Below, piece by piece: positions 1-44,300 of a DNA stretch of 64,000 bases. The position numbers and the translations under genes were made by a program. Below the pieces are notes generated by a model, which had not been told where the DNA came from, made no database searches, and was given only the letters and a program-made list of their open reading frames with translations. The stretch spans positions 28,738,424-28,802,423 of the forward strand of contig NC_092398.1 in the NCBI RefSeq assembly GCF_030028105.1, read 5' to 3'. This DNA is from Mobula birostris (Eukaryota). The number at the start of each line of letters is the position of its first letter. Within the stretch, counting starts at the first letter, position 1.

Positions 1-2189
1 CAAATGAAGGAAAAACCAGGACACTTATTGTAATTGTCAGAAACTTGACAGCCCCCAGGGCCCTCCCTACAATTTATGACCTTCAGTGTCAGCACTAGGC
101 ATATTGCTAATTAAAGGAAGGTGCAGAATATCTCAGATAGCTTAACGTTTTATTCAGAATTTTCTTCCAGACTGACCTACTTCTGCCCTTCTGCTCTGCT
201 GTGCCACAAAGCCTTCGTAAACCATTTCCTTACCACCAATTTCCCTATTTTCACTTCTCTTTGTGAAGTTGGTGAGGTGCATTTCTGTATGTGTGAGCCA
301 TTACTGTTGTTGTAACTTAAAGCTAATCATTAAAAATAAGTCTGTGCTGTTTGTGGAGAATAAAAGGTTTGTTTTGCACAAAATCTGCAGTTCCTCATTT
401 TTGCAACTACTGCTTCTGTAAATTACCATTTTCTTTTCCTGGATAGCTGGGTAGGTGTTTGATGGTAGGAGATTGCACGTTATCCTGCGCTTCAGACAAA
501 TGTGACTCCTGTTTAGTATCTTAGTATTTGAGTCTTGCCAAATGATCATGCTGTTATTTACAACATACAAAAGGCACACAATGGTCAAGGATTTTCGAAA
601 CTATCAACAACTTCAAATTAAAATGCAATTGCTATAGTCTACAAATCACTCAGTTCCCGGGGCGGGGGGTGAGGGGGTGTTGCACCATTCTCAGAAATCC
701 CCTGTAGTGCTCATAGAGGTTGCATGCTCCCTTTCCGTGGAAGTATTTGCATGAATATAATACTGGAAGAGGGGTAGTCAGTCAGCTCAAGCAGAGACCT
801 TGACTGCCTGCTGCCTGGACCCGTGAATGGCCATTTTGGCTAGGCTCAGGAACGAACCTACTGAGAGAGATCTGAGTGATCCACCACGCCGCCACCCCCC
901 CCCCACAATATTGCGTGATTGTAGTTGATGAGCACAAGCACGACGTGCAGCCAGAACTTGAGGAGCAGCTTCTTCAGACATTCAAACAAACAGGCTGCAA
1001 CCTCTCACACTCCATGTACATTCCGTGGCCACTTTATAAGGTACATCTGCTCGTTCATACAAATATCTAATGAATCAATCATATTACAGCAACTTAATGG
1101 ATAAAACATGCAGAAATGTTTAAGAGGTTCAGCTGTTATTCAGACCAAACATCAGAATGGTGTTGAAATGTGATCCAAGTGACTTTGACAGTGAAATGAA
1201 TGCTGGTGCTAGACGGGATGGTTCGAGTATCTCAGAAGCTGCTGAGAAAAGCTTTCCCCACCGTTGAGCACATCTACATGAAATGCTGTCGCAGGAAAGC
1301 AGCATCCATGATTAGGGAATCGCACCACCCAGGACATGCTCTCTTCTCCCTGCTGCCATCATAAGGTACAAGAGCCTCAGGATAACTTCACTCAACTTCA
1401 CTTCCCCATCATTGAAACGTTGCCACCACCAGTGGACTAATTTTCAAGAACTCTTCAGCTCACGTTTTTGATATTTATTCTTATTTATTATAATTTCTTT
1501 CTTTTTTGTATTTGCAGAATTTTTCTTTTGCCCAAGTTGATTTGGTCTTTTATTGATTGTGGGTATTTTATGCCCGTTGAAAAGAAATCCCAGTGTTGAC
1601 ATGTGTATTTTGATAATAAATTTATTTTAAAATTTGACCTCTGTTGGATTTTCATGCACAACAGTTTACAGTGAATAGTGTGAAAAAGAAAAAAAATCCA
1701 GTGACCGTCAGTTCTGTGTGCAAAAACGCCTTGTCAATCAGAGGGTTCAGAAGAGCATGGCTGTACTGTTTCAAGCTGACAGGAAGGTGACAGTAATTTA
1801 AATAACCATACGTTACAGCAGTGGGGTGCAGAAGAGCATCTCTGAATGCACAGCGTGTTCAAACTTGGTCAAGAGCAGCAGAAGACCACAAATATGCACT
1901 CAGTGGCCACTTTATTAAATACAAACGACATCTAATTAAGTGGCCAATGAGTGTACTTTAGTTTTATGAATCATCTTGCTGTTGGATGACAAAGTGTGTT
2001 CAGATTTTATTTGAATCTACAACCATTCTTCATTCTTACAAGCAGGTGTGGCAACAGGAAGATTTTGCTCAGAGGTTAATTGTTCCCTTAAGGATGTAGG
2101 ATTCAGCATCTCTCAATAACGTCTCTGCAGGCATTGACAGCACTGGTCTCCAGCACTGCAGTTAAACAAAAGCACAAGAGATACTGCAA

Positions 2190-2700
2190 TCCGGAGCAAT
2201 AGACACACACAAAATGGTGGAGGAACTCTGCAGGTTAGAGGAACTCTGCAGGTTAGGCGGCATCTGTGCAGGGAAATAAACAGTGGATGTTTCAGGCTGG
2301 GAGCCTTCATCAGGACTGGAAAGGAGAGGAGGAGTGTAAGCTGTCAGGCAATAGGTGAAGCCAGAGAGAGCTGGTGGGCGGGGGAGTGGGGATAGTGACA
2401 AGCTGGGAGGTGATAGGTAGAAAAGGTAACCGCTGAAGAAGCAAGAATCTGATAGGAGAGAATAGTTGACCATAGTGGGAAGGGAAGGAGGAGGAACACC
2501 AGAGGGAGGCAATGGGCAAATGAGGATAAGGGAACAGGTAAAAGGGGAGCCAGAATATGGAATAGACAAGGAAGAAGTGTGGGGAGGGCAATTTCCTGGC
2601 TAGAAAAATCAAAATTTACGCCATAAGGTTGGAGCCCCCATGTGGAACACAGGGGTTGCTCCTCCAACTTGAGTTTAACCTCATCATGGCAGTAAGGAAG
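2190..2700 (-). mobile_element. Penelope-like element 3' fragment (GIY-YIG tail + pseudo-LTR)
   Basis: EEQ..GLQPYGVNFDFS resembles the PLE C-terminus EEQHLIFRLGSLQPDGMNIDFS, followed by a CTGATGA..GAAA pseudo-LTR motif at 2281-2318. Confidence 0.7.
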
Positions 2701-3429
2701 TCATGGACAGACATGTTGGAATGGGAATCGTCATCATCATCATCATATGCCATGTTGTAGGACATGGATGATCATGGTCATAGGTTCTTGGCAAATTCTA
2801 CAGACGTGCCCATTGCTTTCTTCTGGGCAGTTGTTTTACAAAACATGACTCCAGCCATTATTAATACTCTCCAGGGATTGTCTGCCTGGCTATTGCCAAC
2901 TGGCAATGGTCACATATGTTATGTACCAGCTGCTCATATGACCATCCACCACCCGCCCCTATGGCTTCATGTGACCCTGATCATGGGGCTAAGCAAGTGC
3001 TACACCATACCTAAAGGTGACCTGCAGGCTACTAGAGGAGAGAAGCACCTTACACCACCTTTGATAGAGATGTATCTACACTCCCACCACCCCCTAGGAA
3101 TGGGAATAGGAAGTCAAATTAAAATGGTTTAAACTCAAGTTAAAGAGCTGCATTGCAAGGCAGTCAGATTCCAATACACCTCAGGCCAACAAGAATGAGA
3201 CGGTGGATATCAGATGTTCGACTGCCAGCAGGTTGTGAATTTGACATTTTGTTTTAAGCTTCTGTTGTGCATTCAGAGGCAAGTCCTGGCAACTAGCCGA
3301 TTTCTTCTTGCAGACGGTGGACCCCACTCTGTGAGCAGACTTCTGAGAAGAAACAAGAAGAGGGTTGATGAAGATACGGACTGTGGAATATTAAGGTAGC
3401 ACCAGTCAACAGTATGTAACACTTAAGGA

Positions 3430-3980
3430 TATAATTCAGGATACAAGAGATTAGTCAGACTGCACTTGGAGTATTGTGAGCATTTTTGTACCACAAACCC
3501 AAGAATAGATGTACTAGCATTGGTATTGGAGTGGCCCCAGATGAGGTTCATGAGAATAATCCTGGGAATGAAAGAGTTAATGCATGAGGAGCATTTGAAG
3601 GCTCTGGGTCTATAGTCACTGGAGTTTAGAAGGATGGGGGAGGGGTGGGTGGGACCTGGTTGGAGTGGATGTGAGACCTGGGGGAGTCTAGGTCCAGAGG
3701 GCTCAGACTCAGAGTAGAAGGATGTCCTTTTAGAACAGAGATAAGGAGGAATTTCTTTCACCAGGGGGTTGTGAATCTGTGGAGTTCATTGCTACAGGTG
3801 GCCGTGGAGGAGAAGTCATTGGGTATATTTAAAGCTGAGCTTGATAAGTTCTTGATTAGTAAGAGTGTCAAAGGTTATGGGGAGAAAACAGGAGAATGGA
3901 GTTGAAAGGGATGATAAATCAGCCATGATGGAATGGTGAAGTAAACATGATGGGCTGAATGGCCTAATTCTGCTCCTCTG
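3430..3980 (+). mobile_element. CR1 LINE 3' fragment
   Basis: LVRLHLEYCEHF-type motif and CR1 3' UTR ending GGCCTAATTCTGCTCC. Confidence 0.75.
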
Positions 3981-5330
3981 TCGAATGGTTACAGCCTCCT
4001 GACCCCAAGTTCCTGTGTGCATAGTCTGCCCTAGTTAGCTTTTCTGATGTTTACCAGATACAAAATGGGGTGTATGAGAGGGCTAGCACTGCTGGTGAAG
4101 GAACTTGTCGTGTCACTTCTTGGGCAACTCACTCACATTGGTCCCCGACTGACACTCAGCTCTCACCTGCGGCTCCAAGTAGCTGCCACACCCCAGTACA
4201 TTGCTTCGATGGACAGGTTAAAGCAGGTGAGGGTAGCCGGTGGCCTCATACCACAGTGAGATAGGAACATGCCCATCCAAGCATGCAAAGAGATGCGGAC
4301 TGAGTGGATGAGGTCAACAGTGAGATTCAACAGCTAGGAAAGCAGTTCTGTGACACTTCATGGAGAGGAAAGGGCAGGAAAAGGTACAGAAGAAGTCATG
4401 GTTGTCCACTGCAATGAAGGAAGACTTCAGCTGTGACAACTACTCATACCACTGGTGCAGGACTTTCAAATTTCAGAGAGTGCAGCTGCCCCAGTGCAGC
4501 GGTTTTTCCACTTTAAAAACTCTCCTGCACTGGTTTCAAACTCATCATCAGATATGACAGATATCCAATCAATCATATAGATACAAGGCAAACAAGAGAA
4601 GATCTGCAGATTCTGGAAATCCAAGCAAAATGCTTGGAGGAACTCAGCAGGCCAGGCAGTGTCTATGGAAAAGAGTAAACAGTCGACGTTTTGGGCCAAG
4701 ACCCTTCAACAGGAGTGGAGAAAAAAAGATGAGGAGTAGAGTTCTGCTGAAGAATAGGTAAAAATGTTTGCTCTTTTCCATAGACGCTGCCTGTCCTGCT
4801 GAGTTCCTCCAGCATTTTGTGTGTGCTATCCAGATACAAAGTATTACTGACACTGTTGAAGTGATTGCACAGCAAAGAATTTGCATTGTCTTAATGTAAT
4901 TTCCCCCCATATCAAACAGGATTAACGGTTACTCTTGATGACACAGATGTTGGTGGACAGTGTAGTAGGTTGTTGTAGGTTACAGCTGGACATTGGCAGG
5001 ATGCAGAGCTGGGCTGAGAAATGGCAGATGGAGTTCAGCCCAGAAAACTGAAGTGGTTCACATTGGAAGGTCGAATTTGAAGGCAGAGTAAAGGGTTAAT
5101 GGCAGTATACTGAGCAGTGTGGAGCAACAGAGGGATCTTTGGGTCCATGTCCACTGAAATCTCAAAGTTGCCATGCAAGTTGAAAGGATGGTTAAGAAGG
5201 CATATGGTATGTTGGCCTTCATTAGTCGAGGGATTGAGTTCAAGAGCTGACAGGTAATGATGCAGGTCTACAAAACCCAGGTTAGACCACACTTGAAATG
5301 ATGTGTTCAGTCCAGGTCTCTTCATTAGAG

Positions 5331-13435: not shown

Positions 13436-13537
13436 CTTTCCACTTGACGATTCCTCCGGACACTGCAATCAGAATGCCAATTATTCCAGCGATTACTCCA
13501 ATCACATATCCATAGACTGGTTTGGTATTCTTGGGAA
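13436..13537 (-). CDS. MHC exon 4, connecting peptide + transmembrane (VPKNTKPVYGYVIGVIAGIIGILIAVSGGIVKWK)
   Basis: Acceptor gattttcctag|TT, donor G|GTAGGA, 102 nt, phase 1-1. Gly-rich hydrophobic helix followed by basic stop-transfer residues. Confidence 0.8.
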
Positions 13538-16500
13538 CTAGGAAAATCAGTAAAACTGGGGTCAGAAGATATTACAGCAGGGAGCAGTTTGGTCTCAGTT
13601 GGTCAGAATATATTACAGCAGACAGTTTAGATGAATATTGTGGGGGTGATCTCATTCAATCCTATCAAATATTGAAAGGCCAAAATAGTTTGGACATGGA
13701 GAGGGTGTTCCAAATACTGGGAGAGTCTCGGACCAGAGGACACAGCCTCAGAATAGGACAGAGATAAGAAGGAATTTCCTTAGCTAAATCCCTGGAATTC
13801 ATTGCCACATATTGCTCTGGAGGCCAAGTCATTGGTTATATTTAAAGGTGAAGTTTACAGGCTCTTAATTTTTAAGGGTGTCAAAGGTTACGGGGAGAAG
13901 GCAGAAATATCGGGTTGAGAGGATAACAAATCAGTCATGATCACATGCCAGAGCAGGCCCAATAGGCCAAATAGACAAATTCTGCTCCTATAATTTATGA
14001 TCTTATGGTGATCAGCATGGTCCAGTTGGGCTGAAGGGCCCATATCTGTATTACTCCATGACTGATGTAGAAAGGGGAGGTACTGGTCCTCACCAGGTTA
14101 CAGCAGGATTCTGTTCCTGCGAAACAATCGTAACCTGAATGGGTTGAAAATGTGAACCCAATCACCCAATCATGTGGCAGCAACTCGACGCAAAAAAAGC
14201 ATGCAGACATGGCCAAGAGGTCCAGTTGTTGTTGAAACCAAACATCAGAATGAGGAAGAAGTGTGATCTCAGTGACTTTGATCATGGAATCTGGTCAAAA
14301 TGGTACCTGCGTACTATGTCTACTCGGTCGACATCTATCAGAAGATTCATGAAAATGGTTATTTCACTTCTTTTACGTCTGCTTCTCATCTTAAACGTGT
14401 TTCTGGAACTGTTACGCATCTGTGATTTACAGTTTGAAGATCAACAGAGTGACCTAGTGCTTTTCTGTTTCAAAGAAAGTGAGTGCAAGCTTGAACGGCC
14501 TTAAAGTGAAACAGTTTAGAGGTGGTGCGCCAGCCAATGATAGACTCCATTTCACCGATTAAAGCATCGAGGAAGATTGAAATCAAGGCGAGTGCAGAAG
14601 GTAAGTGAGGGTTTAGCACTGAGTGCTGTTTGATCGCAGGGACGGATCTCTCTGTTGTCAGGTGAGTTGTGTAGTACCTTTCACTCACTGTTGCCGGAGG
14701 GTAGGCCTCTGTGTTTCAGTAGTCTCTCTATCTCTATCTCTCGACATTGGTCAGAGGATAATACTGGGGCTCTGCATTTATGGACTGGACTCTGGAGTTT
14801 TTCAGTCTTATGATTTTTATATTCTGTGTTTTCGGCAATTATTTCTCATTATTGTGTGGCGTGTTTTGTTAGTTCTTTGTGTGAAAGAAAGGAGTTTGGG
14901 GTTTGATGTTCTTGTTCTTGACAGCTTTTTTTTGTGTGGTGTGGGCTTTGATGTTTATCTTTGAATGATTTCTGTGCATTTCTTTGTACTGTGGCTATCT
15001 GGAGAAGACGAATCTCGGAGTTGTATACTGAGTACATAATTTCATAATAAATGAACCTTTGAACGATTGTTGATGCCTGACGGGGTGATTTGAGTATCTC
15101 AGAGACTGTTGAGCTTCTGGGATTATCCGGCACGAGTCTCTAGAGTTTACAGTGAATACTGTGAGAAAAAAAAAGACAACACCAAACATCTATTGAGTGG
15201 CAGTTGTGGGCGAAAACACCTTGTCAGTGAGATTTCAGAGGAGAATGGCCAGACTGGTTCACGCTAGCGGATGAGCTACAGCAGCATAAGACCACGACCT
15301 TACACTCAATGGTCACTTTATTATGTAGAGGAGGTGCCTGATAAAGTGGCCACTGAGTGTATAATATAGTGTTGGACAGAGTGTGAACCAGATCATCACC
15401 AGCACACTGCACCCCAAATTACTCAGACTCTGAGCCTTACCCCAAACTGCATGCAGCTTGCCAGGGATGCTCAAATGCTTGATTTCACAAGTGTAAGTGT
15501 CACCCTTCCCGGGGTCAATGTTGACCTGTAGCCGGACTTGGAACGTCCCATCCCGGTTGGGTAAAATGCTTGTATTTAGCACTTCCTGATCGATTCCTTC
15601 ACCATTCCGCAGCCACATTACGTGGATATCCTTGGGATAAAATCCATGTACTTGGCATGTCAGGGCCAAGGTATTCTCTCTGTTCTTCATGTGTCTTGAG
15701 GTTATTGTGATAGTCGGCTTCACTGCAGTGGACAGAAACACATTGAAGCTGAACTTGGTTACAGGATCAGAAAAAGTAAAGAGTAACGGAATTTCAAAGT
15801 TCAAAGTATGCTTATTATTAAAACATCTATACATTATACAGCCTTGAGATTCCACCATGATAGAATGGCAGACTAGACTCGATGGACTAAATGGCCTATC
15901 TCTGAAGGCTAAAACCCTTTAATCTTGCACCCTTGGGACCTGACTGACACTGGACCATAGGAATTGTCTCCTTTAGTCCTAGTCTCGGCCCAAAGTGTGT
16001 GTGTGTGTGTGTGTGTGTTGCTCTGGATTTCTACCACTTGAAGAATCTTTAGTGTTTAGAAACTGTCCCCTGGGTCATTTGCCACTGACCAGGGGGATGG
16101 TTCTTTCAGACACTCCCAATTCACACAAGGGTTTCAAGAACTGTTGGCAACCCAGAGTTTCTGTAAGGTGGAAATACTGCTGGCCGAGAAATCAAAAGTT
16201 GAATTGGGAGGTTAATTAGCTACAGGTTAGTGCAGATCAGAATCAGGTTTGATATCAATAACATACACCCAGTGTCCACTTTACTAGGTACACCAGCTCA
16301 TTAATAAAAATATCTAATCAGCCAATCATGTGGCAGCAATGCAATGCATCAAAGCATGCTGGCATGGTCAAGAGGTTCAGTGGTGACAGACCAAACATCA
16401 GAATGAGGAAGGAATATGATTTAAGTGACTTTGACTGTGGACAAGGTGGGGTAGCTCAGAAACTGCTGATCTCTTGAGATTTTCACACATGACAGTCTCT

Positions 16501-18756
16501 AGAATTAACAAAGAATGGTGTGACAAAGAAAAAAACATCCAGTGAGCGGCAGTTTTGTGGGTGAAAACGCCTTGTTAATGAGAGAGGTCAGAGGAGAATG
16601 GTCCGGACTGGTTCAATCGAACAGGAAGACAACAAGAACTCTAATCAGCACGTGTTACAACAGTGGTGTGCAGAAGAGCAACTCTGAATGCCTTAAAGTG
16701 GATGGGCTACGGCAACAGAAGACAACGAACATACACTCAGTGGCCAATTTAGTAGGCACAGGAGATACCCAATAAAGTAGCGACGGACTGTGAGGTCGTG
16801 AAATTTGTTGTTTTGCATAAAAATACAAATTACTAGAATAAAGATTTAAATTAAATTAGGTCAAATAGAGAGCAAAAATAGTGCGTTTATGTTCATGGAC
16901 TGTTCATAAATCAGATGGCAGAAGGGAAGAAGCTCTTCCTGAATCACTGAGTGCGTGCCTTCAGGCTCCTGTACCTCCTCTCTGATCGCTCCTTGAAGAT
17001 TCCTGAACGCTAAGGAGGCTAGTGTCCATGATGGAACTGATTGAGCTCACAACTTTCTGCAGCTTCTTTCAATACATTGCCGTCTCTGCACCCCGCCCCA
17101 TATGCCGCCAGCTAGAATGCTCTCCACGGTACATCTGTAGAAATTTGAGCAAATCTTTGGTGGCATATCAACCTTCCTCAAGCTCCTAATGAGATTGAGC
17201 TGCTGTCGTGCTACCTTCGTAACTGTCTCAATATGTAGGGCCCAGGATAGATCCCCAGAGCTATTGACAACTAGGAACTTGAAATTGCTCACTCTCTCCA
17301 CTTCCGACCCCTCTTTGAGGACGGGTGTTTGTGTGTTCCCTTGTCTTGTCCTTTCTGTCAAGCTATGGCACAAAGCCTGTTTGAACATCACATTGACAAC
17401 AAACTTACTAGTCAGAGCTCGAATGGCATTGCGAATTCGTGGCGCAATAACCTCAAGGATGTGGATAACTTGACTCATAGCCTTTCTGTTGTTGTTCAGT
17501 ATGTCCAAGTAAGGCTGTACAAGCGGATTGACAGCCACAGCCTTTGCTATGTTGCAATCAAAATGAACGAACTCTTCGCCATTGTAAGCATATATCTCCA
17601 GACTGCCAAAATATAGAGTTACTTGAGCGATGCGCATCCCTGGGAAGCAAACAATAATCGATCCATTAGCCACTTGTGAGAGAGGAATGGCGCAGTTTAA
17701 AACCTTAAAATTTAATCGAATTGAAACAGCAAATTTGTCTCTTCCCTTTCTGTGGATACCACACAATGAAAAGGTACCATTCCACCTATGTTTTTACCAG
17801 AACCACCTCTCCCTCCCACTATAAAACTCCAATAATACAGTAGACTTGGGATTCGGTCGTGCTGGGTAAGCAAATCCTTCACCTTCACTCACTGCATCCA
17901 CCTCCCTCAGTTCCGTGCCCACATTCCCACCTACCCCCTCGACCAAACCCCTCTCTTCACCCTCAACGCCTACCTCTCTCTCAATCTCCCTGTCCAAATC
18001 GATACATACCCTCGAAAGGCCCCTCCCTCAACACTCCTTCCACAGATATCTTTACTCACCATCTGCACCAAACTCTTCATCTACGCCCTCAGCACCCCGC
18101 CCTCTCTCGCTATCCACCCGCGGCGATCACTTTCCTCCCACTACAAACACCTTTGCTGCCCCCTCTCCACCTTCACTCCCTTGGCCCCCACTCTCCTTCG
18201 GAGACGCCTCTCCTCCCCTCAATCGACGCCCTCTCCCATTCCCACCCTCCATATGCGCCGCCTCCACCCCGCCCCACCCTCTCTCCCTAGGTGCCCGTTA
18301 CCATCCGCTCCCCACCCTCCCTCGCTGCCTACTCCCCTCTCCACCCGATCATCTTTCGGTGTCCCCTCCCTTCCTCAGTGCTCCTCTCCCAGTGCTACCT
18401 CCCCTCCCTTCCTCGGTGCCCCTCTCCTCCCGACTCTACATCTCTGCCCCCTCCCCTCTTTCGTTGATCGCTCCCGTACCCTCCTCATCCTCCTTCGGTG
18501 ACCCCTCGGCCTTACCCTCCCTTGGTGCCTCGGTGCCCTCTCCATTCTCCTCCCCTACCCACCCTATCCTCCCTCGGTGCCTCTTTACTTCCCCACCCGC
18601 CCTCGGTGCTCCCACTCCGCCCGGGCTGCGCCTCTCACCTAGGGTGGGAGAGCCGTTGAGGAGGAGGAGGAAGGCGGCGAGCAAGGTGGGAGAGCGGCGT
18701 CGCCTCACGCCGGCTAGCTGGCTCACGGTTCGAAGAGACGGCATCATTACCCCCAT
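13436..18756 (-). CDS. WB: MHC gene with class II-type exon architecture and class I alpha3-type Ig domain; probable W-category beta chain. Four exons identified; cytoplasmic tail exon uncertain.
   Basis: Exons 18639-18756, 17409-17672, 15441-15722 and 13436-13537 join in frame through phase-1 GT-AG introns (766 nt, no stops). They give leader + one groove domain + one Ig C1 domain + TM. No second groove-domain exon is visible in introns 1 or 2. Confidence 0.8.
13600..14060 (+). mobile_element. CR1 LINE 3' fragments in MHC intron 3
   Basis: GDLIQSYQILKG..GESRTRGHSLRI motif. Confidence 0.7.
15441..15722 (-). CDS. MHC exon 3, C1-set Ig domain (94 codons), class I alpha3-like
   Basis: LTCQVHGFYPKDIHVMWLRNGE...ILPNRDGTFQ...DTYTCEIKHLS. 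Both canonical Cys and the Trp are present. Acceptor cactgcag|TG, donor G|GTAAGG. Confidence 0.92.
15995..16018. repeat. (GT)12 microsatellite in MHC intron 2
   Basis: Direct reading. Confidence 0.95.
17409..17672 (-). CDS. MHC exon 2, class II beta1-like groove domain (88 codons; alternative acceptor at 17639 gives 77 codons)
   Basis: LEIYAYNGEEFVHFDCNIAKAVAVNPLVQPYLDILN aligns without gaps to the class II beta1 pattern [36 protein letters not shown]. Acceptor ctctctcacaag|TG, donor A|GTAAGT. Confidence 0.8.
17820..18610. repeat. Low-complexity C/T-rich tract (G-rich on the MHC sense strand) filling intron 1
   Basis: Runs of C throughout and several degenerate CTCGGTGCC motifs. Explains the overlapping Pro/Ser-rich ORFs. 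Confidence 0.85.
18639..18756 (-). CDS. MHC exon 1, signal peptide MGVMMPSLRTVSQLAGVRRRRSPTLLAAFLLLLNGSPTL
   Basis: ATG at 18756, basic stretch followed by hydrophobic core LLAAFLLLL, donor G|GTGAGA in phase 1, CpG-rich context. Confidence 0.75.
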
Positions 18757-21600: not shown

Positions 21601-22431
21601 GAAACCTCAGGGTAATAGTTGAATAAGTGAACAAATAGGGAACTAGCATCATAAAGGACCAGAGGGACACAGATACTGTATTATGGGTGATAATTTTAAG
21701 AGGTGCTGCCACTGAACACTAGGTGGTGTAAGAGACCAGAGATGAGGTAGGTGTCTTCACTGGAATTCCACAAAGTGCATCGTCAGCCCCCTGCTCCCTG
21801 TACACTCACGACCTCCTGGCCGGATTCTGCTCGAACCCCACCCACAAGTTTGCAGATGAGACCACTGTGGCGGGCTGGATCTCAGATACCAATGAGAGGA
21901 AGTGGAGGAAAAAAAGAGAGAGTCCAGGGGCGGACGGATCCGCGCTAACAACCTCTCCCCGACTGTCGGGAGAACGAAAGAGCTGGTCCTTGACTTCGGG
22001 AAGGGAGCGGCGCACGCACTCCTATTTACAGCACCGGTGCCGGGGTGGAGGGCTGAAAATTTTTAGTAGAGAACATTATCAATAAGTTCTTCTGTTCCAA
22101 CCACATAGATGCCGCAGCCAAGAAAGCGCACCATCTCTTCTATGTGCTCTGGAGACTAAAGAAATTTGTCTGCTCCCTTTGTACCTTCACCAATTTTTAT
22201 CGATGCATCATGGAAAGCATCTTATTTGGATGCATTATGGTTTGGTTCGGCAACTTTTCTTCCTGAGGTCTGACACCTGACAATGCAGGAAATCACGGGA
22301 GCTGGTCCTAACTGCTCTGTGTCCGAAGATCAATGAAGAGTTTGAACCGCAGCACGAAAATTATTTGCAGTTCCATGAACACCAGAGCAGCACGTATAGT
22401 AGTCGTGATCGGTGCAGACTCTGGACCTTAC

Positions 22432-22687
22432 TCCAAACTGCGCTCAGTCTCTCCAGGACACTCCTGTACTCCAGTTGAGAATTGTAGGTGTTCGCCACCT
22501 GCTGGAGTCAACGCCGGCATGAAATCTACGTTGGAATCTCCTGTGCTGCTTTGGTAAAATCCTTCGCCATTCCGCAGCCACGCTGTGTTAACGTCGCTTG
22601 GGTAAAATCCATCCACTCTGTACATCAGGACGAAGGGCTTTACTCCCACGTTCAGCTGTGTTAACGTTATGGTGATGGAACGTTTCG
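22432..22687 (-). pseudogene. Decayed paralog of the MHC Ig exon (exon 3)
   Basis: KRSITIT...VLMYRVDGFYPSDVNTAWLRNGEG matches exon 3. Acceptor AG is mutated to GG, the exon is 26 nt shorter with frameshifts, and both Cys codons are lost (TAC, TCT). The donor GTAAGG and flanking intron motifs are retained. Confidence 0.85.
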
Positions 22688-22714
22688 CCGCAGTGGAGAG
22701 AAACCATAAGACAC

Positions 22715-23535
22715 AGGAGCAGAATTCAAAGGTCCAATTTAATGTGTACAATATACATCCTGAAATGCTTTTTCTTCGCAAACATCCACGAAATCAGAGA
22801 AGTGCCCCCAAGAATGAACGACAGTTAAACGTCAGAACCCCAAAGTCTCCTCCCCCCAGTTCCCCCCTCCCGCGCGTAAGCGGCAGCAAGCAACGATCCC
22901 CCTCCCCCCACCAGTGAAAAAAAAAACCCGCATCCGTACCATCATAGAGCCCAAGCGTGTGCTAAGCAATAGAGTTGACATGGGCAAAGTTACCCCAAAG
23001 GCTTTGCATTTCTCCCATTCGACAAACAGCAGGTTCTCTCTCTCCCTGGCAAGGGAAAGGGAGGTGTCCCCCCATTTTCACAGTGAGTGGGAGACATAAC
23101 AACAACCCGCTGTTTATGATCGTAAAAATCCGTTTCTTCGTTTTTTTCGAGCTCTGTGTCCGAAGATTCGCGAAGACCACCGGTTTCGGGCCCACAGCGT
23201 AAGACTTTCCGACCACCCCGACGACACACGAGTCTCCAGCCGTGGCAACGACCCTCGATCCGCCCATCTCCAGAGCCCCGAGATCTTAGGCTTCCGAACA
23301 CGATCGAAATTCTCAGGTCAAACCCTTGTCAAACCGAATAACGGCCAGTTGTGGACCCCGAGAGCTGGTCCCATTCCCGCAAAAAACCGAAGCCTATGTT
23401 TAACCAGGTCAGGGCCTTCAAAAGAATCCTGAAAGAGAAAAATAAAGATATTACAGGTAGAAATAGAGCTGTTTCCGAAGATGCGAGCAAAGGAGTCGCC
23501 GTTAGGCGCCATTATCCCTCCTAAGCTCCGCCTTC
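22715..23535 (-). mobile_element. CpG-rich non-autonomous retroelement just upstream of the MHC pseudo-exon
   Basis: Sharp compositional boundaries, unmutated CpGs, no conserved ORF. Resembles dispersed batoid repeats (recognition only, not searched). Confidence 0.45.
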
Positions 23536-29500: not shown

Positions 29501-32148
29501 ATGTTGGCAAAGAAGGCGTATGCATCATTCCATTAACTGGTCGTGTTTTTAGTGATGGGTTTAGGAAGTCATGCAACAGCTGCGTGAATAATTAAACGTC
29601 GATATCTCTAACTTCCAGTTCATTCTCCCCCTCTACTCTCCCCTCTTCTTTAATTCTCCACTCTTCCTGCACTTACTCCCTCTCTTTCCCCCACTACGCA
29701 TTTCCTCCGACTACAGCCCTTCCCTTTCTCCCATGATCCATTCACTTTTCAGATCTGATTCCTTCTTCTGCTATTAGTCTTCCACTTATCACCTCCTAAC
29801 ACTGTTTCGCACCCCCTCTCCTATTTACCTGACTTTATCTGTCACATTCTAGCTTGTACACTTTCCCCTCTGCCCTCCTTCTTACTCTGGTTTCTTTCCC
29901 CTTGCTTTCCAGTTTTGATGAAGGGTACCGGAAACCTCGACTGTTTGTTCATTGATATAGATCCCGCCTGAGCTAATGAGTCCCTCCAGGATTTTGTATG
30001 CATTGCTGCGGATGCCTAGCTTCTGAAGAAACTCTAGACTGCATAAATAATTGTTTTGGCCATCGTTTAATTGCCCGTCTAACCATCACTTAGATAGAGT
30101 ATTGATCAAGCAGACATTGAACACGCAGACACACACGAGCAGTTTAAATTAGCGTTATTGATGGCATCGACATCATGGGCCGAACGGCCTTTCCCTGTGC
30201 AGCACTGATCTGTGTTCATCATTTTCAATCACGTATTTATAAAACTGATTTGAGTGCGTATTCTTTGATTCGATAACCTGGACCAGACAGCCTCGTTTGC
30301 CATAGTTCTTGAGAGACAGACACAATGGTAGAACGCGCAGACAAATGCTAATAATATACTCCGCGACACAGAAGCTTGTCTTTTATAATGGAGCGGGAAA
30401 TTGACGGAGGAAGTTTCATTTTAACAGTATTTTATTTTTCATTCTTATCGATACAGCAGGGTAGCAGGGGTTTGCACCAGAACCTTCACGTCTTTGGAAT
30501 GTGAATGCATTTGGAAGAAACCCACGTCGTCAACGACAGAACATAGAAAATTCATAGAGACGGCTGCGGTGACTGAAACCGCTTTAAACCGCGTTCGACT
30601 AGGTGGGCAGCACCGGTTTCTTACTCTTCATTCCGAATAGTTTCTCTCAAAATGTGAGTGAATGGAAGTTTCACCACCTCTCGCATCTGCTCCCGGAACT
30701 TCCTCTGGGTAAAGGCGTAAAGAGCCGTGTTTGTGCAGCAGCTCAGCAGCTGCAGCATGTAGCCCAGCTCCCTTGTGGTCTCAGGTGGGATCCCAGCACC
30801 AAAATATAGCAAACGCTTCCACACAGTGTGCACAACATAAAGCATCCACAACACTATGAAATTCGCCGACACGACCGACAGTAAAATGATCGACTTCCTT
30901 CGGTTCTCTATCTCCGGGTCCTTGGAACTATCCCCACTGTTGTGACTCCAGAGTCTCCTCCGAGATCTGCTCGCCACTAACACGTGTCTGATGATCAAAG
31001 CATTGAGCAGCAGAATGACCACAAACGGGATCACAGGCGTCAGGAAGTAGCTACTGAACTCAACCAATGTCTAGGCCTCTAAGCGATGTAAAATAAATCT
31101 TTCTATGCAAAACCGAGGGATGTTAGAGAGGCTATAACTTACAAAGAGCATAAAATACCAGAAAATGTTCTTCAAGCAGCTCAGCGCGGCCACAGTCCGT
31201 AGAACCACAGCCGCCGTTCTCTCGGTGTAGTATTTAGCTTTCAGATTCTGGCAGCGAATAGCCACAAATCGGTCAAAGGTGAACATGACGGTAAACCAGA
31301 CGGAACAGTCGTTGGCTGCGTAAAGTAGGACGGCGTGGACATTACAAATGGGGATGTTCACCAGGAATTCAAAAGATTCCGAATAAACAATCGGAATCTG
31401 CCTCAGTACCAGGTCTAAGATAACAACCAGGAGATCCGCTGCCATGGCCATCAGATAACGAGTGACTCCTTTAGAAAGACCGCACTTTCCCCGGGACAGG
31501 ACCACAATCGTCAGCACGTTCACTATTGGGATTGAAGGAAACACCATCTTGTCAGTGGGGAAGTAGAAATGTCGGCCAAGTTACAGACAGGAAATTTGGA
31601 AACATGTTTTTGAACCAAGACGTGTAGACTGTAGTTTTCCAGCATCAGCGATGTCTGCAGGGGACGAGGATGAGAGCTCAGTGAAGTCAACAAAGGACGG
31701 GAAAATAACGTCATCACATCAACAAACGAAGATCTGAGAAGAAGTGTTCCCGGATTTCGGTGACGATGGATTTGGAATAGGGGTCCGAATTGGTCATTGA
31801 ATTGGAATTGCTTTACTGTTACCAAACTGGTATGACAAGGTACAGGGAAACACGCGTCTCCACACTGTGCAGACAGATCAATACATTACTGTACTCAGTG
31901 CTTTGAGACTGTGCCGTAAGTTCAGCTCCAGCTCTCAGGCTTCTTCTGCCGGTCCCTTAAATTTAAACAATATTCCTCAAACGAGAATTGGGAAGTCGTC
32001 TATTTTAAACTACACTCTAACCTGATGAGTTCTATATCTGAAACTTTAAGAGATAGAGACTCAGTTAAAACTTGTAAACTCCAGCTCAGAACCTGTTAAT
32101 TTAACGTTGTTTTTAAATAAAATATTTTGTCTGTTGTTATTTCAGTTT

Positions 32149-32415: not shown

Positions 32416-35400
32416 TTTTGTTCTGCACACCAGTGACTACCAGGAATAGTCTGGTTGGCAACCGGGAATAGTTCAGTGTCAGCGTGGAGAGACAATGGAC
32501 AACCAGGAAAGACTGGCACCGGGGGTGTCAGGATTGGCAGTCTGGGCACCAGCTCAGAAGAGCACCCACCTCTTGAAGCTTTAGTTTATATGGAGAAACA
32601 TATCCTCGGAGTCCTCCGAGAGGGAGGGAGAATGATGGACCCAATCGGACGGCTGCAATTAATTACAGGGAACGACTATGGCCAAGAGCTAGGATAAGAG
32701 GCTCTGAGTGTCCGGTATGTTGGTGTGGGAGAGCGTTTTCCAGCATTAAAGGTTTACGAGTCCACCAAGCAAAGTTGAGGTGCTAATACATCCCAGTGGA
32801 TGAAGATGAGATTACTTCACTAAGCACAGATGATGTGGTCTTTTCAACCTCTCATTCACAAGCCACAGCGATTCGCTCTGGAGAGTCATCATACTCCAGG
32901 TCAGACGAGAGATAACCCAGGTCAGGTTTCAGACCACAGTACCCAGGTAGATCCTTCGCATGATGGCAGCGGTGTAGAGATAGAGAAGAAGAGGAAGGTC
33001 AAGTGGTCAGCAATGGCAGATGAGAAGGCTTGGCGTGTGTTTGATGAGGATATCAGTATGATGCTGGAGAACACTCTCAGGGGAACATCAAAGAGAAATT
33101 TGGAAGTGATGGGCGATATGATTTACGATGTTGGAAAGTACAGGTTTGGTTTGGTTGAGTTGAAGAAAGCAAAGCCTTCAAGCAGGCGGCAGAAGGAGAT
33201 TAGTAGGTTGAGAAGAGAGCTTAGATCGTTGAGACAGAGGTGGAAGGTAGCAAGTGAGGGTGACAAACTAGGGCTTGCTGATCTCCGAGAGCATTTTCGA
33301 ATAAAGTTAAGATCACTCCGTCGTGCAGAGTCACAACATAAAAATAGAAAGAAGAGAGGGAAGGCAAGAAAGTCATTCTTTGAGAACCCTCACGTGTTCA
33401 CAAAGAAACTGTTTGAACAAAGTAAGAGTGGGCAGCTTAACATCTCTCAACAAGAACTTGAGGATCAGCTGGCAAGCACGTACTCTAACGAACAGCGGAA
33501 GGCTCCTTTGCTTGACATTTCAGGACTTGTGAAGCCTACCAAGCCAAGAGTGAAGTTCGATCTGTCAGAACCCAAAATGGCAGAAGTCGAACGGCTCATC
33601 AGAAAGGCAAGGTCGGGCTCAGTGCCAGGACCTAATAGAGTGCCATATAAGGTGTTCAAGAAGTGTGAACAGCTGAGGAAATACTTGTGGAGATTGTTAA
33701 AGGTGGTGTGGAGACAAGGTGTTGTTCCTTGGAGTGAGGCTGAAGGAGTATACATCCCGAAGGAAAATAATTCTTCTACATTGAATCAGTTACGACCAAT
33801 TTCACTCCTGAATGTAGAAGGGAAGATTATGTTTGGCATTCTGGCAGAAAGAATATCTTCATTTGTGATAGAGAATGGATTAGTAAATGCATTTGTGCAA
33901 AAGGCAGGAGTACCAGGCTTCCCAGGATGCCTTGAACATTCTAGTATGATATGGCATACCATCCAGGAGTCTAAAAGGTTGAGAAGAAATCTGGCTGAAG
34001 TTTGGCTTGATCTGGAAAATGCGTATGGTTCTGTTCCCCATGTCCTGATTGAGTTTGCAATGGAATTGCTATGGATTCCTGCTAAGGTGAGGAACTTTGT
34101 TATGCAGTACTACAATGATTTCTGGATGAGGTTTTCCACTCAGCAGTTTACAACTAGGTGGCAGAGCTTGGATGTTGGAATCCCAATGAGATGTGCAATT
34201 TCACCCATCCTTTTCGTGTTAGTCATGGAGGTCAGTGTGAAGCCTACAGAATCAGTGGGATCTGGTGTCGCACTTGATGGCGGACAGGATTTACCACCAA
34301 TACGAGCGCTCATGGATGATCTTACCCTTTTGGGTCCCAGCACGGAGGCAATGGAAAATGTACTATCTAGACTCGAGGAACTAATGGATTGGGGAAGAAT
34401 GAAGTTCAAGACCAGGTAGTCAAGGAGCCTTGTTCTTAGGAGAGGAAAGCTGGTTGACTTTAATTTCACCCTTTGTGGAGAGGAGATTCCATCCATTCAG
34501 GACCAACCAGTTAAGAGCCTCGGGCGATGGTACACAGAGGAGCTGAGAGACATCAAGAGGGTTCAAGAGACAGGAGAACAGATCAGCAGAGGTCTGATGT
34601 CCGTTGACAAGTGTGGCTTACCTGGCAAGTTGAAGTTGTGGTGCTTGCAGTACGTAGACTGATGCCACGGATAATGTGGCCACTAACTGTCTATGAAGTG
34701 GCAATGTCCCATGTTGAGGCAATGGAATGGAAGATCAACAAGTATGTGAAGGAGTGGCTTGGAATACCGAGCAGCCTCACCAATGTTGCAATCCACAGTA
34801 GCCAGACAAAGCTTACCATCCCAGTTCAATCCCTTGTTGAGGACGTCAAGGTAGCCAAGGTAAGATCATTCTTGATGCTTCGAGACTCAAAAGACCCTGT
34901 CATCAAGAACACCCAGCCGGATGCAAGATCAGGCAGGAAGTGGTCAGCCCGTGTAGCAGTTGATGAGGCCGAGTGTAGATTGAAGCACAAGGAGATGGTT
35001 GGGTCTATCCAGCTAGGCCGCCAGGGACTTGGATGGACAACCCACAAACGGTGGTCATCTTCTACAGGTAAGGAGGGCCGTGCGCTTGTAACACAGGAAA
35101 TACGAGAGGTAGAAGAGGAGAAGAGGTTAACTAAAACAGCTGGCCTGGCCAAACAAGGGGCTTGGACCCAGAGGGAAAGTGTTGAACAACGACATCTATC
35201 TTGGAATGTTCTGTGGCAGATGGAACCGCTCCGCATTTCTTTTCTATACAGAGCAACGTACGATCTGCTCCCAACACCTGCCAACCTCAGCACCTGGTTT
35301 GAAGGTAAGACAGACAGGTGTGCTGCTTGTGGCGAGAAGGGAACACTTCAACATATTTTGAATGCATGCAGAGTCAATCTTTCCAACGGCATGTACACTT

Positions 35401-35996
35401 GGAGACATAACAACGTTCTCAAAGTTGTAACAGAAGCGGTTGAGCAGAGAGTACTGCAGCACAACTTATCTCATGCCCCATGCTGCACAGAACATCCATA
35501 TCATTTGTGAAACAAGGCTCCAAGTCAAGGGTGTACAGCATAGGCTCACGATCAAGCATACTTTCTTCAGCCAATGATTGGTGTGTCAAGGCCAACCTGG
35601 ATGGGAAGGGCAGTTTCCCGGAACAAATAACTTTCACCACATTACGTCCAGATATAATCGTATGGTCTGACACCAGTAGGGAAGCGGTTATTGGTGAACT
35701 CACAGTCCCCTGGGAAGATAACTTCGATGAAGCCCATGAGCGCAAGTTAACGAAGTATGCAGAATTAAGATCAGAGTGCAGAGACAGAGGGTGGAAGGTC
35801 TCGTGCTATCCATTCGAAGTAGTCTGTCGTAGGTTTATTGCATTTATTTTCCGGAAGTGGCTGCGTGACCTTGGCTTCACTAGAAGAGAGATCAAGTCAA
35901 CCAGCAGGGCTGTAGCTGAGGCAGCAGAGAAAGGATCAGCACAGGTGTGGACAAGTATGTCCAGAGGGGCAGATAGTCAGACAGTGTATACATATC

Positions 35997-36237
35997 TTGC
36001 AAACCCTTCAGTAGTTGCATAGACACCTGAAGAGCAGACTATCTGTTGGAGGCAGATGCCAAGTTTTTAAGCTCACCAGTGGGAGGTCGTGCTTTAGCAC
36101 TGCTGGCCCACCACTTCGAGGGAGTCTTGATCATAAGCGGGCCGAAACTCCTGAAGATAGATGGCAGATCAACTGATGATCCCACTGGTGAGAGCACAGG
36201 ACAGTTAACATCTTAGTCCACGTGTACTTTGTAACTC
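35997..36237 (+). repeat. HERO 3' UTR / 3' direct terminal repeat
   Basis: Matches 32149-32415. Confidence 0.9.
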
Positions 36238-40573: not shown

Positions 40574-41326
40574 TTACTTAACCATAATGGGAATTTGGAC
40601 AGTACTGAAATAAACCAAAGGGATGCACACAATGTGGACAACATAAATCATCTGCAACACAATGAAATTCCCCGACACGGCCAATAGTAAAATGATTCTT
40701 GGGTTCTGCATTTTCGGGTCCTTGGAGCGATCCCCACTATTGCGTCTCCGGAGTCTTCTCCGGTCTCTGCTCGCCACTAACACGTGTCTGATCGTCAAAG
40801 CATTGAGCAGCAGAATGACCACAAACGGGATCACAGGCGTCAGGAAGTAGCTGCCGAACTCGACTACGGTCCAGGCCCCTGAGATCAGGGGAGCAGAACG
40901 TACTTCGCAAAACCAAGGGTTGTGAAACATCCAATATATTCCTGAGAGCAAAAAATACCAAAAAAATGTTCTTTAAACAGGTCAGCGCGGCCATAGTCCC
41001 CAGAACCACAGCCACCGTTCTCTCGGTGCAGTATTTAGCTTTCAGATTCTGGCAGCGAATAGCCACAAATCGGTCAAAGGTGAACATGACAGTAAACCAG
41101 ACGGAACAGTAGTTGGCAGCATGAAGTAAGCCGGACTGGACATTACATACGGGGATGTTCATCAGGAAATAAAACGCTTCCCAGCAAACAACAGGAAATT
41201 GCCTTAGTACCAGGTCTAAGTTAACAACCAGGAGATCCGCTGCTGCCATGGCCATCAGGTAACGAGTGACTCCTTTCGAAAGACCGCACTTTCCCCGGGA
41301 CAGGACCACAATCGTCAGCACGTTCA
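40574..41326 (-). pseudogene. GPR139-like: GPR139-like GPCR, copy 2 (partial exon 2 only)
   Basis: TM1-TM6 homologous to the other copies. +1 frameshift in an A7 run (40960-40966), exon 1 deleted (junction ~41931), TM7 replaced by unrelated sequence after ~40580. Confidence 0.85.
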
Positions 41327-44300
41327 CTATTGGGATTGAAAGAAACACAAGCATGTTTGTGGGCAAGAAGCAAAGCCAGCAAATCACAGACAGGAAATAT
41401 GGAATCATGTTTTTGAACCCAGACTTGAAGAATGTTCCGGCATCGGCGATATCCGCTGGGGACGAGGGTTACAGCTCAGTGAAGTCGACAAAGAAGTTGA
41501 AAATAACGTCATCGCAGCAACCAACGAGCAGCTGATAAAAAGTGTCTTGGATTTCGGTGAAGATGGATTTGGACTAGGGCTCGGAATTGAGCATTGAATT
41601 GGAATTGCTTTACTATTACCGAAGTGGTATAACAAGGTACAGGGAAACACGCGTCTCCACACTGTGCATACCGATTAATTCAATACTCGGTGCTTCGAGG
41701 CGGTGCTGTAATTTCAGCTCGAGCTCTCAGGCTTCTTCTGCCGGTCCCTTAAATTTATTCCATCTCCCTCAAAAAATATTTGGGAAGTCATCTATTTCAA
41801 ACTACACTCCAAACTGACGAATTCAATAATCTAGGGATTCAGACTCAGTTGAAACTTTTAAATGCCAACTCAGAACTTTTTATTTAACGTTGTTTGTAAG
41901 CAAAGTTATTGTTCTGTTCATTTGTATTTTGAAACTCAATGCACTGTGGCAATGATATTTTATCTGTGTTTATTTCTTGTGTTTTTGCCTTGCATTGAAT
42001 GCAGAGTAAGAATACTTCGTTCTCCTTTGCACTTACGAATAAAAAAAAACCCGTTTACAAATTTTACCACTGTGCAGTGGGATGGACCAATGGGATCAGG
42101 GAACTGCCTGCAAGGCTGATGGAGTCGTGGCGTGTGCTCCGCAAGTCTATGAACATTGAACAGTCTCCTCAGAGTGAAAGACTGAGATGAGATCCTTTCC
42201 ATGGTTGGGAGGAGGATGATATAAACCCGCAGAACTTCGCAGCATCTAATCTAACGTCACTGCGAGGGTGATGAATGAGTGGATATTGTGTATCGGATGA
42301 GGAACACTTCGGAAATTATGCGGGGAAAAATTGCCTCATAAAAGGGATTTAGACCATATCTGTATTAAAGTAATATGTAGATATTACTTTCCGTTATGCA
42401 GACCGTTCACTCACCTGAAACTGTGTGAACCCGCACAGAATGCTGGAGGGTTTCAGCAGTTCAGACTGCATCTATGGAGGTGAATAAAGAGTCGACGTTT
42501 CGGGTCGAGACCATTTTAAATGGAACTACGAATAGTTCTGGAGAGGAAGGAGGCACATGCCAGAATAAGACGGTGGGGGAGGCGATACGGAGTACAGACT
42601 AGTACGTGATACTTGTGGCCAAGTGAGCGGTTAGGTGGGTGGGTGAGGAAGAGGAATGAAGCAAAGATGTTGTAGTTGATATTTGGAAAAAGTAAGAGAT
42701 GGAGAATAAGGAATCTGATAAGAGAGGGGAATGAACAATGGAGAAATGGAAGGGGGCGGGGAAGTGAGGGAATGAAGGAAGAGTAGTACCAGAATGGACA
42801 ATTGAAGAAAAGGGAAGGGGAGCGCAGAAAAGTATCGGAAAACATTAAAACCATGACATTTTGTTTTAATGCACCTACCACAGCAAAAATGTTTCCGCAA
42901 TTATACCCATCTGCATATCTCTTAGGTTGATGTAATTCGTTCGGGTCACCTCGCAGGAAAAAATAAGACCAGCTTATCCAATATCTCTTCATAACCTGCA
43001 ACCCAAACAAATTTCCAGAGATTCTCCTCCGCAGCCGATCTCGTCCTCCTGTACTACGGTGACCAGAATTACACACTGTACTCCAAAGCCGGGCTAGGTA
43101 ACGTTATGCATATGAGATGGTGTAGAAAAAAGAAACAGCCATGACTGAATAGTGGAGAAGTCCAGTTGGGCAGAATAGCTTCATTGTGATGCTCTCATTT
43201 TCGGGTTCAATAAATCACCCTGGGTCCCTTTCACTTTCCAGTTTTACCCTTTATACTCACAGGTACGTCCTGGCCTTAACCTGTTGATATCTCCCTCTTA
43301 ATACTCTCTCACCGGACGTCTGTTCCTTCCATTAGACTACTGCTAGATGTCGTCGAAATGTCTGGATATTATCCCTGTTCTAGTTTATGGCTTAATATCC
43401 GGATCCGTCCTCACCTTTCCCATAACGAACTGAAAATTAAAAGTCAATCTCACAGGATTAGGGGACTGCTGAGTAGTCTTGTAACAAGGGGATAGAGGCT
43501 GTCTTTAGCCAGATTTAATTTTCTTTCGAATAGGATCGAGCAGCAGGGAGAATGTCTTGAGTTCAAGGATGTGTTGTTATGTGGGCGCTTTACTGTTCCA
43601 GAGAGGTGTGCAGACAGAATCTCTGAACTGGAGACAAGTTGACCTAATGGACCGGTCTGCGACAGAAAGGGAAGCAGCGTCAGCGAATTCACCGGGAGCG
43701 TTTGGGACGTCAGCCTGGAAACACACCTTGTTTCAGGTGTGTGGTACAGACCAGAATTCATCACACTGCTGGGCTGCGTTGGGCTGTGTTTGTACATACG
43801 GGTAACCATCACATGTGTAGAAGGTCGGAAGTTGTGAGCACGCTCCAGACGCCGGTGCACAGGGGCACAATTTTGGGGATACACACCAGTACACCAGGGA
43901 GCGGTGCTGCGAGACGTGTGGACAGTCAAACCCCAGTGGAGATGGGTAGTGTATAGGGAGGCGTGTGGGAACACAAGACAACGGAACAGTGGTAAACATG
44001 TTTGGATCTCCCTCCTATATGCTGATTTTGTTATCAGCTTCGATCCGGTCAGCGATAATGGTATCGTTGGAAAACCTAAATAAGGCATGGGAGCTGTGCG
44101 GAGCCTTACAGTTATTGAATATGAAGCAAATGTAGCAGTGGGCTCAGCACCCAGTCTTTTGGTGCACCTGTTCTGATGGAGAATATGGAGCAGATGTTGT
44201 TCTCAATCCGAACTCACCGGGGTCTGCATGTGACGATATCGAAGATCTGTTTGCACAAGGAGGTATTCAGAGCATTTTCGTTAAGTTTATTCATTAGTCT

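Follow-up and report, generated by a model that had tools for sequence, protein, structure and literature searches.

The 64,000-nucleotide stretch of Mobula birostris DNA analysed in this study (contig NC_092398.1, positions 28,738,424 to 28,802,423 of the forward strand; hereafter referred to as the window, with positions counted from its first base) very probably carries, on the minus strand, a five-exon gene for a W-category beta chain (WB) of the major histocompatibility complex (MHC), belonging to the WB_DS1 lineage. W-category molecules have been proposed to stand between class II and class I of the MHC as an intermediate form. The criteria for the category include class I-type interdomain residues (in WB chains, Pro at position 57 and usually Gly at position 61 of the beta2 domain, but never Trp at position 61), residues of the class I alpha2 type in the beta1 domain's first half (Q6, A32, G35 and D37) and the occurrence of WA and WB genes in pairs (Okamura et al., 2021; PMC8713811). 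In cartilaginous fish, three WB lineages have been described, DS1, DS3 and Nds5L, and the batoid WB sequences available in 2021 were fragments from the little skate only, WB_DS1-like among them (PMC8713811). An initial annotation, made from the letters of the window, had proposed a functional and intact WB gene with four coding exons at this locus.

The coding sequence extends from 18756 to 3293 on the minus strand, a span of about 15.5 kb, as compared to 15.4 kb for the orthologous locus in M. hypostoma. It is divided into five coding exons with canonical AG/GT splice sites and a single continuous frame, and every intron is in phase 1 when read on the minus strand. The predicted product is a type I membrane protein of 260 residues, which consists of a 39-residue leader, a 77-residue beta1 domain, a beta2 immunoglobulin (Ig) domain of the C1-set, a glycine-rich transmembrane (TM) helix and a short tail.

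Transcripts from a sister species of Mobula (runs X1 and X2), whose DNA differs from the window, show the structure and splicing of the gene. In a 1219-nt RNA contig from run X2, contig positions 43-272, 274-554 and 555-656 correspond to window positions 17409-17638, 15441-15721 and 13436-13537, and contig positions 655-1219 to 2780-3344, so that exons 2, 3, 4 and 5 are joined at their exact borders. The junction between exons 2 and 3 is also seen in a 505-nt RNA contig from run X1. Six nucleotide differences in exon 2 of the sister-species contigs account for the five amino-acid differences between the window and protein P0001, the M. hypostoma orthologue, and because they reproduce the changes in P0001, the RNA comes from M. 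hypostoma or from a source indistinguishable from it. No second groove exon is present in the 1219-nt contig, which runs from 42 nt 5' of exon 2 straight through the Ig, TM and tail exons. The single groove domain of the initial annotation thus stands in the sister-species contigs, as do two of its predicted junctions (17409/15722 and 15441/13537), whereas the third, 18639/17672, has its acceptor at 17639 instead.

Exon 1 (18639 to 18756) starts with the ATG at 18756-18754, encodes the leader with its basic n-region and hydrophobic core and ends in a phase-1 donor (AG/GTGAG). It is 93% identical to residues 1-42 of P0001 in a tblastn search. A sister-species RNA contig spans 18654-18800 and continues upstream, which places the start of the 5' untranslated region (UTR) beyond 18800 and marks the stretch 5' of the ATG as 5' UTR. 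Exon 2 (17409 to 17639) encodes the beta1 groove domain in 77 codons; the domain has no disulfide pair and is shorter than in the paralogues. The acceptor of this exon, at 17640/17639, lies behind a good pyrimidine tract and is used by P0001 as well as by the RNA contigs of runs X1 and X2 (pieces 17409-17638), and the sister-species contigs have zero depth at 17639-17743. In the orthologue and paralogue proteins, the leader is directly joined to G-M-R/H-I, and we placed the start of exon 2 at 17639 because the P0001 leader runs without a gap into G-M-R-I-A-Q. The alternative in-frame acceptor at 17672 was ruled out, since both the orthologue protein and the RNA contigs begin exon 2 at 17639; the 33 nt at 17640 to 17672, which the initial annotation had read as part of exon 2, are intronic by this evidence.

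Exon 3 (15441 to 15722) encodes the beta2 C1-set domain, with both cysteines, the conserved Trp and the motif LPNRDGTFQ, in which P57 and G61 are located. Exon 4 (13436 to 13537) encodes the connecting peptide and the glycine-rich TM helix and ends in KWK. The TM sequence, compared by eye, resembles the WB DS1 rows of Dataset S3 in Okamura et al. (2021), and G231 is nearly invariant in the alignment. Exon 5 (3293 to 3342) has a clean acceptor and encodes a cytoplasmic tail of 16 residues that terminates with a TAG at 3295-3293. This exon was identified in a tblastn search with residues 243-273 of P0001; this C-terminal stretch of 31 residues aligns at 3349-3257, which is some 10 kb downstream of exon 4. 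A four-exon model that ends at 13436 was ruled out by the recovery of exon 5, which the same RNA contig joins to the rest. The 3' UTR covers at least 2780 to 3292, of which 39 nt belong to the coding sequence in the orthologue; the 1219-nt X2 contig lies on 2780-3344 and more contigs reach down to about 1617. The borders and frames of exons 1, 3 and 4 had been correctly placed from the sequence, and the corrections concern the start of exon 2 (17639, not 17672) and the number of exons (five, not four).

The two extracellular domains differ in their affinities. The groove exon was assigned to the Pfam family MHC_II_beta (E = 1.3e-8; 35.4 bits with a cutoff of 20.9), and its best match to a solved structure is chicken class II BLB2 (E = 2.9e-5), the first 36 aligned positions containing about 16 identities, in line with the count of about 16 of 36 in the initial annotation. 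The Ig exon was assigned to the C1-set (E = 6.7e-19) and, among solved structures, is matched best by MR1, CD1 and class I alpha3; the 60 matches listed for this exon do not include a class II beta chain. In the motif LPNRDGTFQ, Pro occupies beta2 position 57 and Gly position 61, and Trp is absent, as had been noted from the sequence and is seen in the alignment, whereas class II beta2 domains have an invariant Trp at position 61. These two positions are those of P235 and G239 in HLA-A, the latter at the site of W153 in HLA-DR beta. Both P57 and G61 are found in the window gene and in most of the ray family, and the Pro in LPNRDG is present in all ray members that cover the region and in shark WB_DS1.

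In the beta1 domain, the Gln, Ala and Gly of the class I alpha2-type set are present, in M-R-I-A-Q and Y-A-Y-N-G, although one conventional class II beta chain in the set also has Y-D-G. The domain contains a single Cys, which is replaced by Ser in the orthologue from Hemitrygon akajei, and thus no disulfide pair. An AlphaFold model of the orthologue, with a low overall predicted local distance difference test score (pLDDT) of 60.7, has a confident Ig domain and a beta1 domain with four strands and a long helix. The best 50 fold matches of this model in the PDB are all class II beta chains, aligned over about 180 columns and both domains.

The eleven proteins recovered when the Ig exon was used in a word-indexed search come without exception from myliobatiform rays (Mobula hypostoma, M. 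birostris, H. akajei and Hypanus sabinus) and are all named "class II histocompatibility antigen ... beta chain-like". The top match was P0001, a protein of 273 residues from M. hypostoma with an Ig domain that is 97% identical, which identifies it as the orthologue. The orthologue proteins are 269-273 residues long and contain one groove domain each. In an exhaustive HMMER search with P0001 as the query against 1.84 billion representative sequences, the members of the ray family ranked highest (E = 3e-139 to 1e-47), and the first protein outside the rays was the shark protein P0018 (E = 5.5e-43). These were followed by another shark protein, P0038 (E = 2.8e-31), by the catshark WB_DS3-type protein P0059 (E = 6.6e-26), by class I heavy chains (E about 1e-22 to 1e-19) and by P0127, the first full-length class II beta chain with W61 (E = 6e-20), with fused multi-Ig gene models interspersed among the ranks. 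The cluster of P0018 includes XP_041035565.1 from the great white shark, whose beta1, beta2 and TM strings equal the rows labelled "great white shark WB DS1L" in Datasets S1-S3 of Okamura et al. (PMC8713811); the rows were compared to the database proteins by reading. The first half of beta2 of the window gene is also close to the row "little skate WB DS1 like" as well as to the row "spiny dogfish WB DS1 like", with A-K-P-x-I-T-I-T-S, G-F-Y-P-x-D-I and W-L-R-N-G in common. The mislabelling predicted in the initial annotation is borne out by the NCBI names, which for all ray and shark relatives are of the class II beta chain-like type.

We inferred a maximum-likelihood tree from 54 Ig domains, including 12 ray sequences and three class II beta chains with W61. 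The 12 ray sequences form one clade (98/99, starred), which is the sister group of shark WB_DS1 with a support of 93/90. A separate clade (95/83, starred) unites the three class II beta chains with W61, and the class I groups are located elsewhere in the tree, so that the ray Ig domains fall outside both the class II beta2 and the class I lineages and together with shark WB_DS1. The Ig domain of the window gene is 49% identical to great white shark WB_DS1L, as compared to 35-47% for class I alpha3, 36% for WB_DS3 and 32-38% for class II beta2. With its class II-type architecture, P57 and G61, great white shark WB_DS1L as the closest relative outside the rays and the position in the Ig tree, the assignment to the W-category beta chains is upheld and, as judged from sequence comparison, the gene is a batoid member of the WB_DS1 lineage.

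Compared to the published WB genes (PMC8713811), the order of leader, beta1, beta2 and connecting peptide/TM/cytoplasmic parts is the same, with one exon per domain. Common to both are also P57 and G61 and the opening K-P-x-I-T-I-T in beta2, the A-Y-(D/N)-G motif, a Gln near the start of a beta1 domain that has no disulfide, and a TM segment of the type G-Y-V-x-G-I ... G-G-I, and the two groups, with Ig domains that are 47-49% identical, are sisters in the Ig tree. In contrast, the manta beta1 domain is only about 20% identical to that of shark WB_DS1 and nine residues shorter than in the ray paralogues and the sharks, and the cytoplasmic tail of the ray gene is unrelated to the shark tail.

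Several observations weigh against the identification of the locus as a working WB_DS1-type gene, and one group of them concerns the assignment itself. Position 37 of beta1 is Glu, where Asp was given as the residue typical of class I and W molecules; the same Glu, however, occurs in shark WB_DS1. The support of 93/90 for the grouping of rays and shark WB_DS1 is below the starred level. The beta1 domain taken alone is about 20% identical to shark WB_DS1 and about 20% identical to conventional class II beta1, with BLASTP scores of 31 and 24 bits, respectively. When the two domains are compared separately, as proposed earlier, the Ig half groups with the shark WB_DS1 proteins, and beta1 alone would give a weak family call. 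The lineage was therefore assigned from the Ig domain and the TM segment, with the ray paralogues, at 39% identity, as a bridge. The beta1 part of the AlphaFold model has pLDDT values of 41-66, and no groove geometry was read from the model because of this low confidence. Finally, no WA exon was found in the 64-kb window with a tblastn search with the Ig domain at word size 2, a six-frame scan for C1-set motifs, a listing of short open reading frames (ORFs) in 1-3400 and a tblastn search with all collected MHC proteins; apart from the Ig exon of the WB gene itself, these returned just a single decayed Ig exon and, at 56.1 kb, a repeat-like match of 26 residues.

The other group of adverse observations concerns the state of the manta copy. 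The TAG at 3295-3293 replaces a GAG codon for Glu in the orthologue, the frame of which continues to a stop at 3256-3254, and 13 C-terminal residues are thereby lost. Relative to the orthologue and apart from the nonsense change, there are 13 nonsynonymous changes in 594 sites and 5 synonymous changes in 186 sites. This divergence looks near neutral and corresponds to a ratio of nonsynonymous to synonymous rates (omega) of about 0.8, for which values of 0.3 or less are disfavoured (P about 0.04) and values of 0.4-0.5 are compatible with the small counts. The divergence of the exons, about 2.4%, matches the 2.2% of flanking noncoding DNA (48 differences in 2149 bases). In the own-species RNA runs X3, X5 and X24, from unspecified tissues, no contig was found on exons 2 or 5 despite the presence of paralogues, with the limit that contigs show presence and not absence; the own-species RNA contigs on exons 3-4 differ by about 8% and thus derive from paralogues. 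At the nonsense codon, an own-species DNA contig carries the same base as the window, and both DNA (run X11) and RNA (run X2) of the sister species have C at 3295 on the plus strand, corresponding to GAG.

These data are what would be expected if the gene belonged to the same WB family but the manta copy were a young pseudogene or a silenced gene that drifts neutrally, with the nonsense codon in the last exon as its first visible lesion; the rest of the frame would then be open just for want of time to decay. We regard this as a real possibility, although not as the one to be favoured. The lost tail ends in A-S-E-C-T-T-E-A, a motif that most Mobula paralogues retain and that is almost unchanged in the H. 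akajei orthologue of the stingrays, so that the TAG removes a common feature of the family. All six differences in exon 2 are nonsynonymous, the orthologue is expressed in two sister-species runs while own-species depth is zero on exons 2 and 5 with paralogue transcript present, and the decayed WB Ig exon 4 kb upstream implies that gene decay occurs in the cluster. However, none of the splice sites is damaged, and the two Ig cysteines, the TM helix and 260 codons are all preserved. A stop codon in the last exon should not trigger nonsense-mediated decay, and a membrane protein of 260 residues with a 16-residue tail is predicted to be still made. MHC groove domains under selection often have omega values near or above 1; the counts are moreover small and compatible with an omega of 0.4-0.5, and the Logan contigs from which expression was assessed show presence rather than absence. 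The open frame has also been kept in the lineage since its split from the stingrays (P0008).

We consider the odds that the manta copy is still working to be about even. The description of the gene as intact is accurate for the frame and the splice sites but not for exon 5, where the last 13 residues of the orthologue are cut off, and the claim that it is functional could not be established, given the nonsense-cut tail, an omega near 1 and the lack of own-species RNA contigs on exons 2 and 5. In DNA contigs of the own-species sample of run X7, word depth is 5.2-6.8 at 3048-5017 as compared to 11-15 at 237-2694, with an even depth of 24-27 in the sister species. The two haplotypes of the sequenced animal may thus differ past 3048, and the TAG allele may be heterozygous.

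The window gene, P0001 of M. hypostoma and P0008 of H. akajei constitute a ray-specific subgroup in the Ig tree (99/94, starred) with beta1 domains of 76-77 residues, as compared to 85 in P0003, the other full-length ray paralogues and the sharks. Relative to the paralogue P0003, six residues are missing from the S1-S2 hairpin and three from the helix, with Q5 and the AYNG motif kept, and the beta1 domain of the window gene is 39% identical to the long-beta1 ray paralogues. The WB_DS1-type family as a whole has expanded in the myliobatiform rays; M. hypostoma alone has five or more products. The shortened beta1 domain without a disulfide points to a nonclassical role over classical peptide presentation. 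A more specific idea, which we consider improbable, is that the short-beta1 subgroup represents a structurally distinct W molecule, confined to stingrays and mantas, with a narrowed or closed groove. Instead of presenting ligands, such a molecule could assist or regulate other W heterodimers, much as DM and DO do for class II, and the manta would be in the process of losing it.

Two Mobula paralogue products, P0005 and P0010, end in a 34-residue tail (G/E-A-V-H-N-P-D-V-M ...) instead of a TM helix. A similar stretch is located at 56096-56173 on the plus strand of the window, remote from any MHC exon. This suggests that the tail is an exonised repeat, which would give rise to tail-less, possibly soluble, WB isoforms among the paralogues.

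It is very unlikely that the gene is instead a divergent conventional nonclassical class II beta chain, similar to DOB or DMB, whose Ig domain has lost the Trp. Such an origin would agree with the Pfam assignment of beta1 and its best match to BLB2, with which it has the stretch Y-x-Y-N-x-E-E-F-V-x-F-D and about 35% identity in common, with the whole-chain fold matches to class II beta chains, including HLA-DO beta, with the class II beta-like names at NCBI, and with a domain order and exon plan that are the same as in chicken BLB2 and HLA-DRB1. Unlike the conventional class II beta chains, however, the ray gene has no beta2 Trp61 (W153 in HLA-DR); the class I positions are occupied by Pro and Gly, which is also the case in WB and class I chains, and its beta1 domain has no pair of the Cys15-Cys79 type. 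Its nearest relatives are published WB_DS1 proteins, and the class II beta chains with W61 are placed in a separate, starred clade and appear in the HMMER search at an E-value of 6e-20, as compared to 5.5e-43 for the first shark protein. A class I heavy-chain gene with a missed alpha1 exon is hardly conceivable: although MR1, CD1 and class I alpha3 are the solved structures closest to the Ig domain, which has P-x-x-D-G-T-[FY]-Q in common with these and with classical class I, and although class I heavy-chain alpha2-alpha3 regions align to beta1-beta2 (E = 1e-19 to 1e-22), the sister-species RNA contig has no additional exon, the orthologue proteins have a single groove domain, no further MHC-like exon was found in the window by tblastn of the collected MHC proteins, and the ray gene differs from class I heavy chains in having one groove exon rather than two and a TM segment of the class II beta type. 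Use of beta2-microglobulin is not expected.

For a WB chain, a mechanism can be proposed by analogy with the salamander WA/WB molecules (Okamura et al., 2021). The chain and a WA alpha chain would together make up a heterodimer of class II shape, in which the membrane-proximal contacts, between beta2 and alpha2 and between the platform and the Ig domains, would be of class I type. In such a dimer, Pro57 of beta2 would bond with Tyr8 of a WA alpha2 domain that resembles beta2-microglobulin, and Trp61 of WA alpha2 would take over the platform-supporting role of the missing class II beta2 Trp. A heterodimer and its expression on the cell surface have been demonstrated for WA/WB of the tiger salamander only (PMC8713811), and it is from this analogy that heterodimerisation, interface chemistry and type of ligand are inferred for the ray chain.

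The locus supplies a complete, transcript-supported gene model for a ray gene of the WB_DS1 lineage, and it provides evidence that, in the myliobatiform rays, this lineage has grown in number and diverged into forms with a long and forms with a short beta1 domain. The annotation of these genes as class II beta-like hides the WB family from comparative surveys. A truncated, apparently silent copy in the manta next to an expressed orthologue in its sister species also provides a small natural test of whether the subgroup is dispensable. The W family was published in 2021, and the gene adds a member to it but leaves the general picture of the family unchanged.

WA and WB genes are arranged as head-to-head pairs in sharks, teleosts and the coelacanth, and WB_DS1L of the great white shark adjoins WA_DS10L (PMC8713811). 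At the orthologous loci in rays, in contrast, a C1-set gene is located tail to tail with the WB gene: in M. hypostoma it lies on the opposite strand, 4.5 kb past the point where the orthologue ends on its 3' side, and in H. akajei on the opposite strand, 7.3 kb downstream of the orthologue. This suggests that rays have a convergent WA/WB pair, with the neighbour as the candidate WA gene. The convergent neighbour in M. hypostoma has been modelled as a 473-residue product with SRCR domains in addition to the C1-set domain, a gene model that probably fuses an SRCR gene with the WA-like gene. In the window, 3.2 kb are left downstream of the WB gene. An own-species RNA contig of 823 nt (run X24) aligns with zero mismatches to 1-306 and extends 517 nt past the start of the window, and a sister-species contig aligns to 1-353; the RNA-covered segment 1-306 is possibly the 3' end of the convergent neighbour, the candidate WA gene.

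The decayed WB-type Ig exon is located at 22433 to 22685 on the minus strand (ORF 22428-22781), about 4 kb upstream of the WB gene. It is frameshifted across three frames, its first Cys is changed to Tyr, and its C1-set score of 16.9 bits is below the cutoff. The best match is the shark WB_DS1 protein P0158, with 36% identity, and the exon resembles WB_DS1 of sharks and skates more than it does the intact genes of the ray family; its vicinity yielded no beta1 or TM exon to go with it. Further upstream, four intronless copies of a rhodopsin-family receptor gene (Pfam 7tm_1) were identified on the minus strand, at 30621-31547, 40574-41408, 49839-50557 and 63162-63785, at least three of which are split into two ORFs by stops or frameshifts. 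They represent a tandem array of G protein-coupled receptor genes, partly pseudogenised, that adjoins the W-category gene. A retroelement of the long interspersed nuclear element (LINE) type, with reverse transcriptase (RVT_1) and zf-RVT domains in several ORFs, occupies 32830-36022 on the plus strand.

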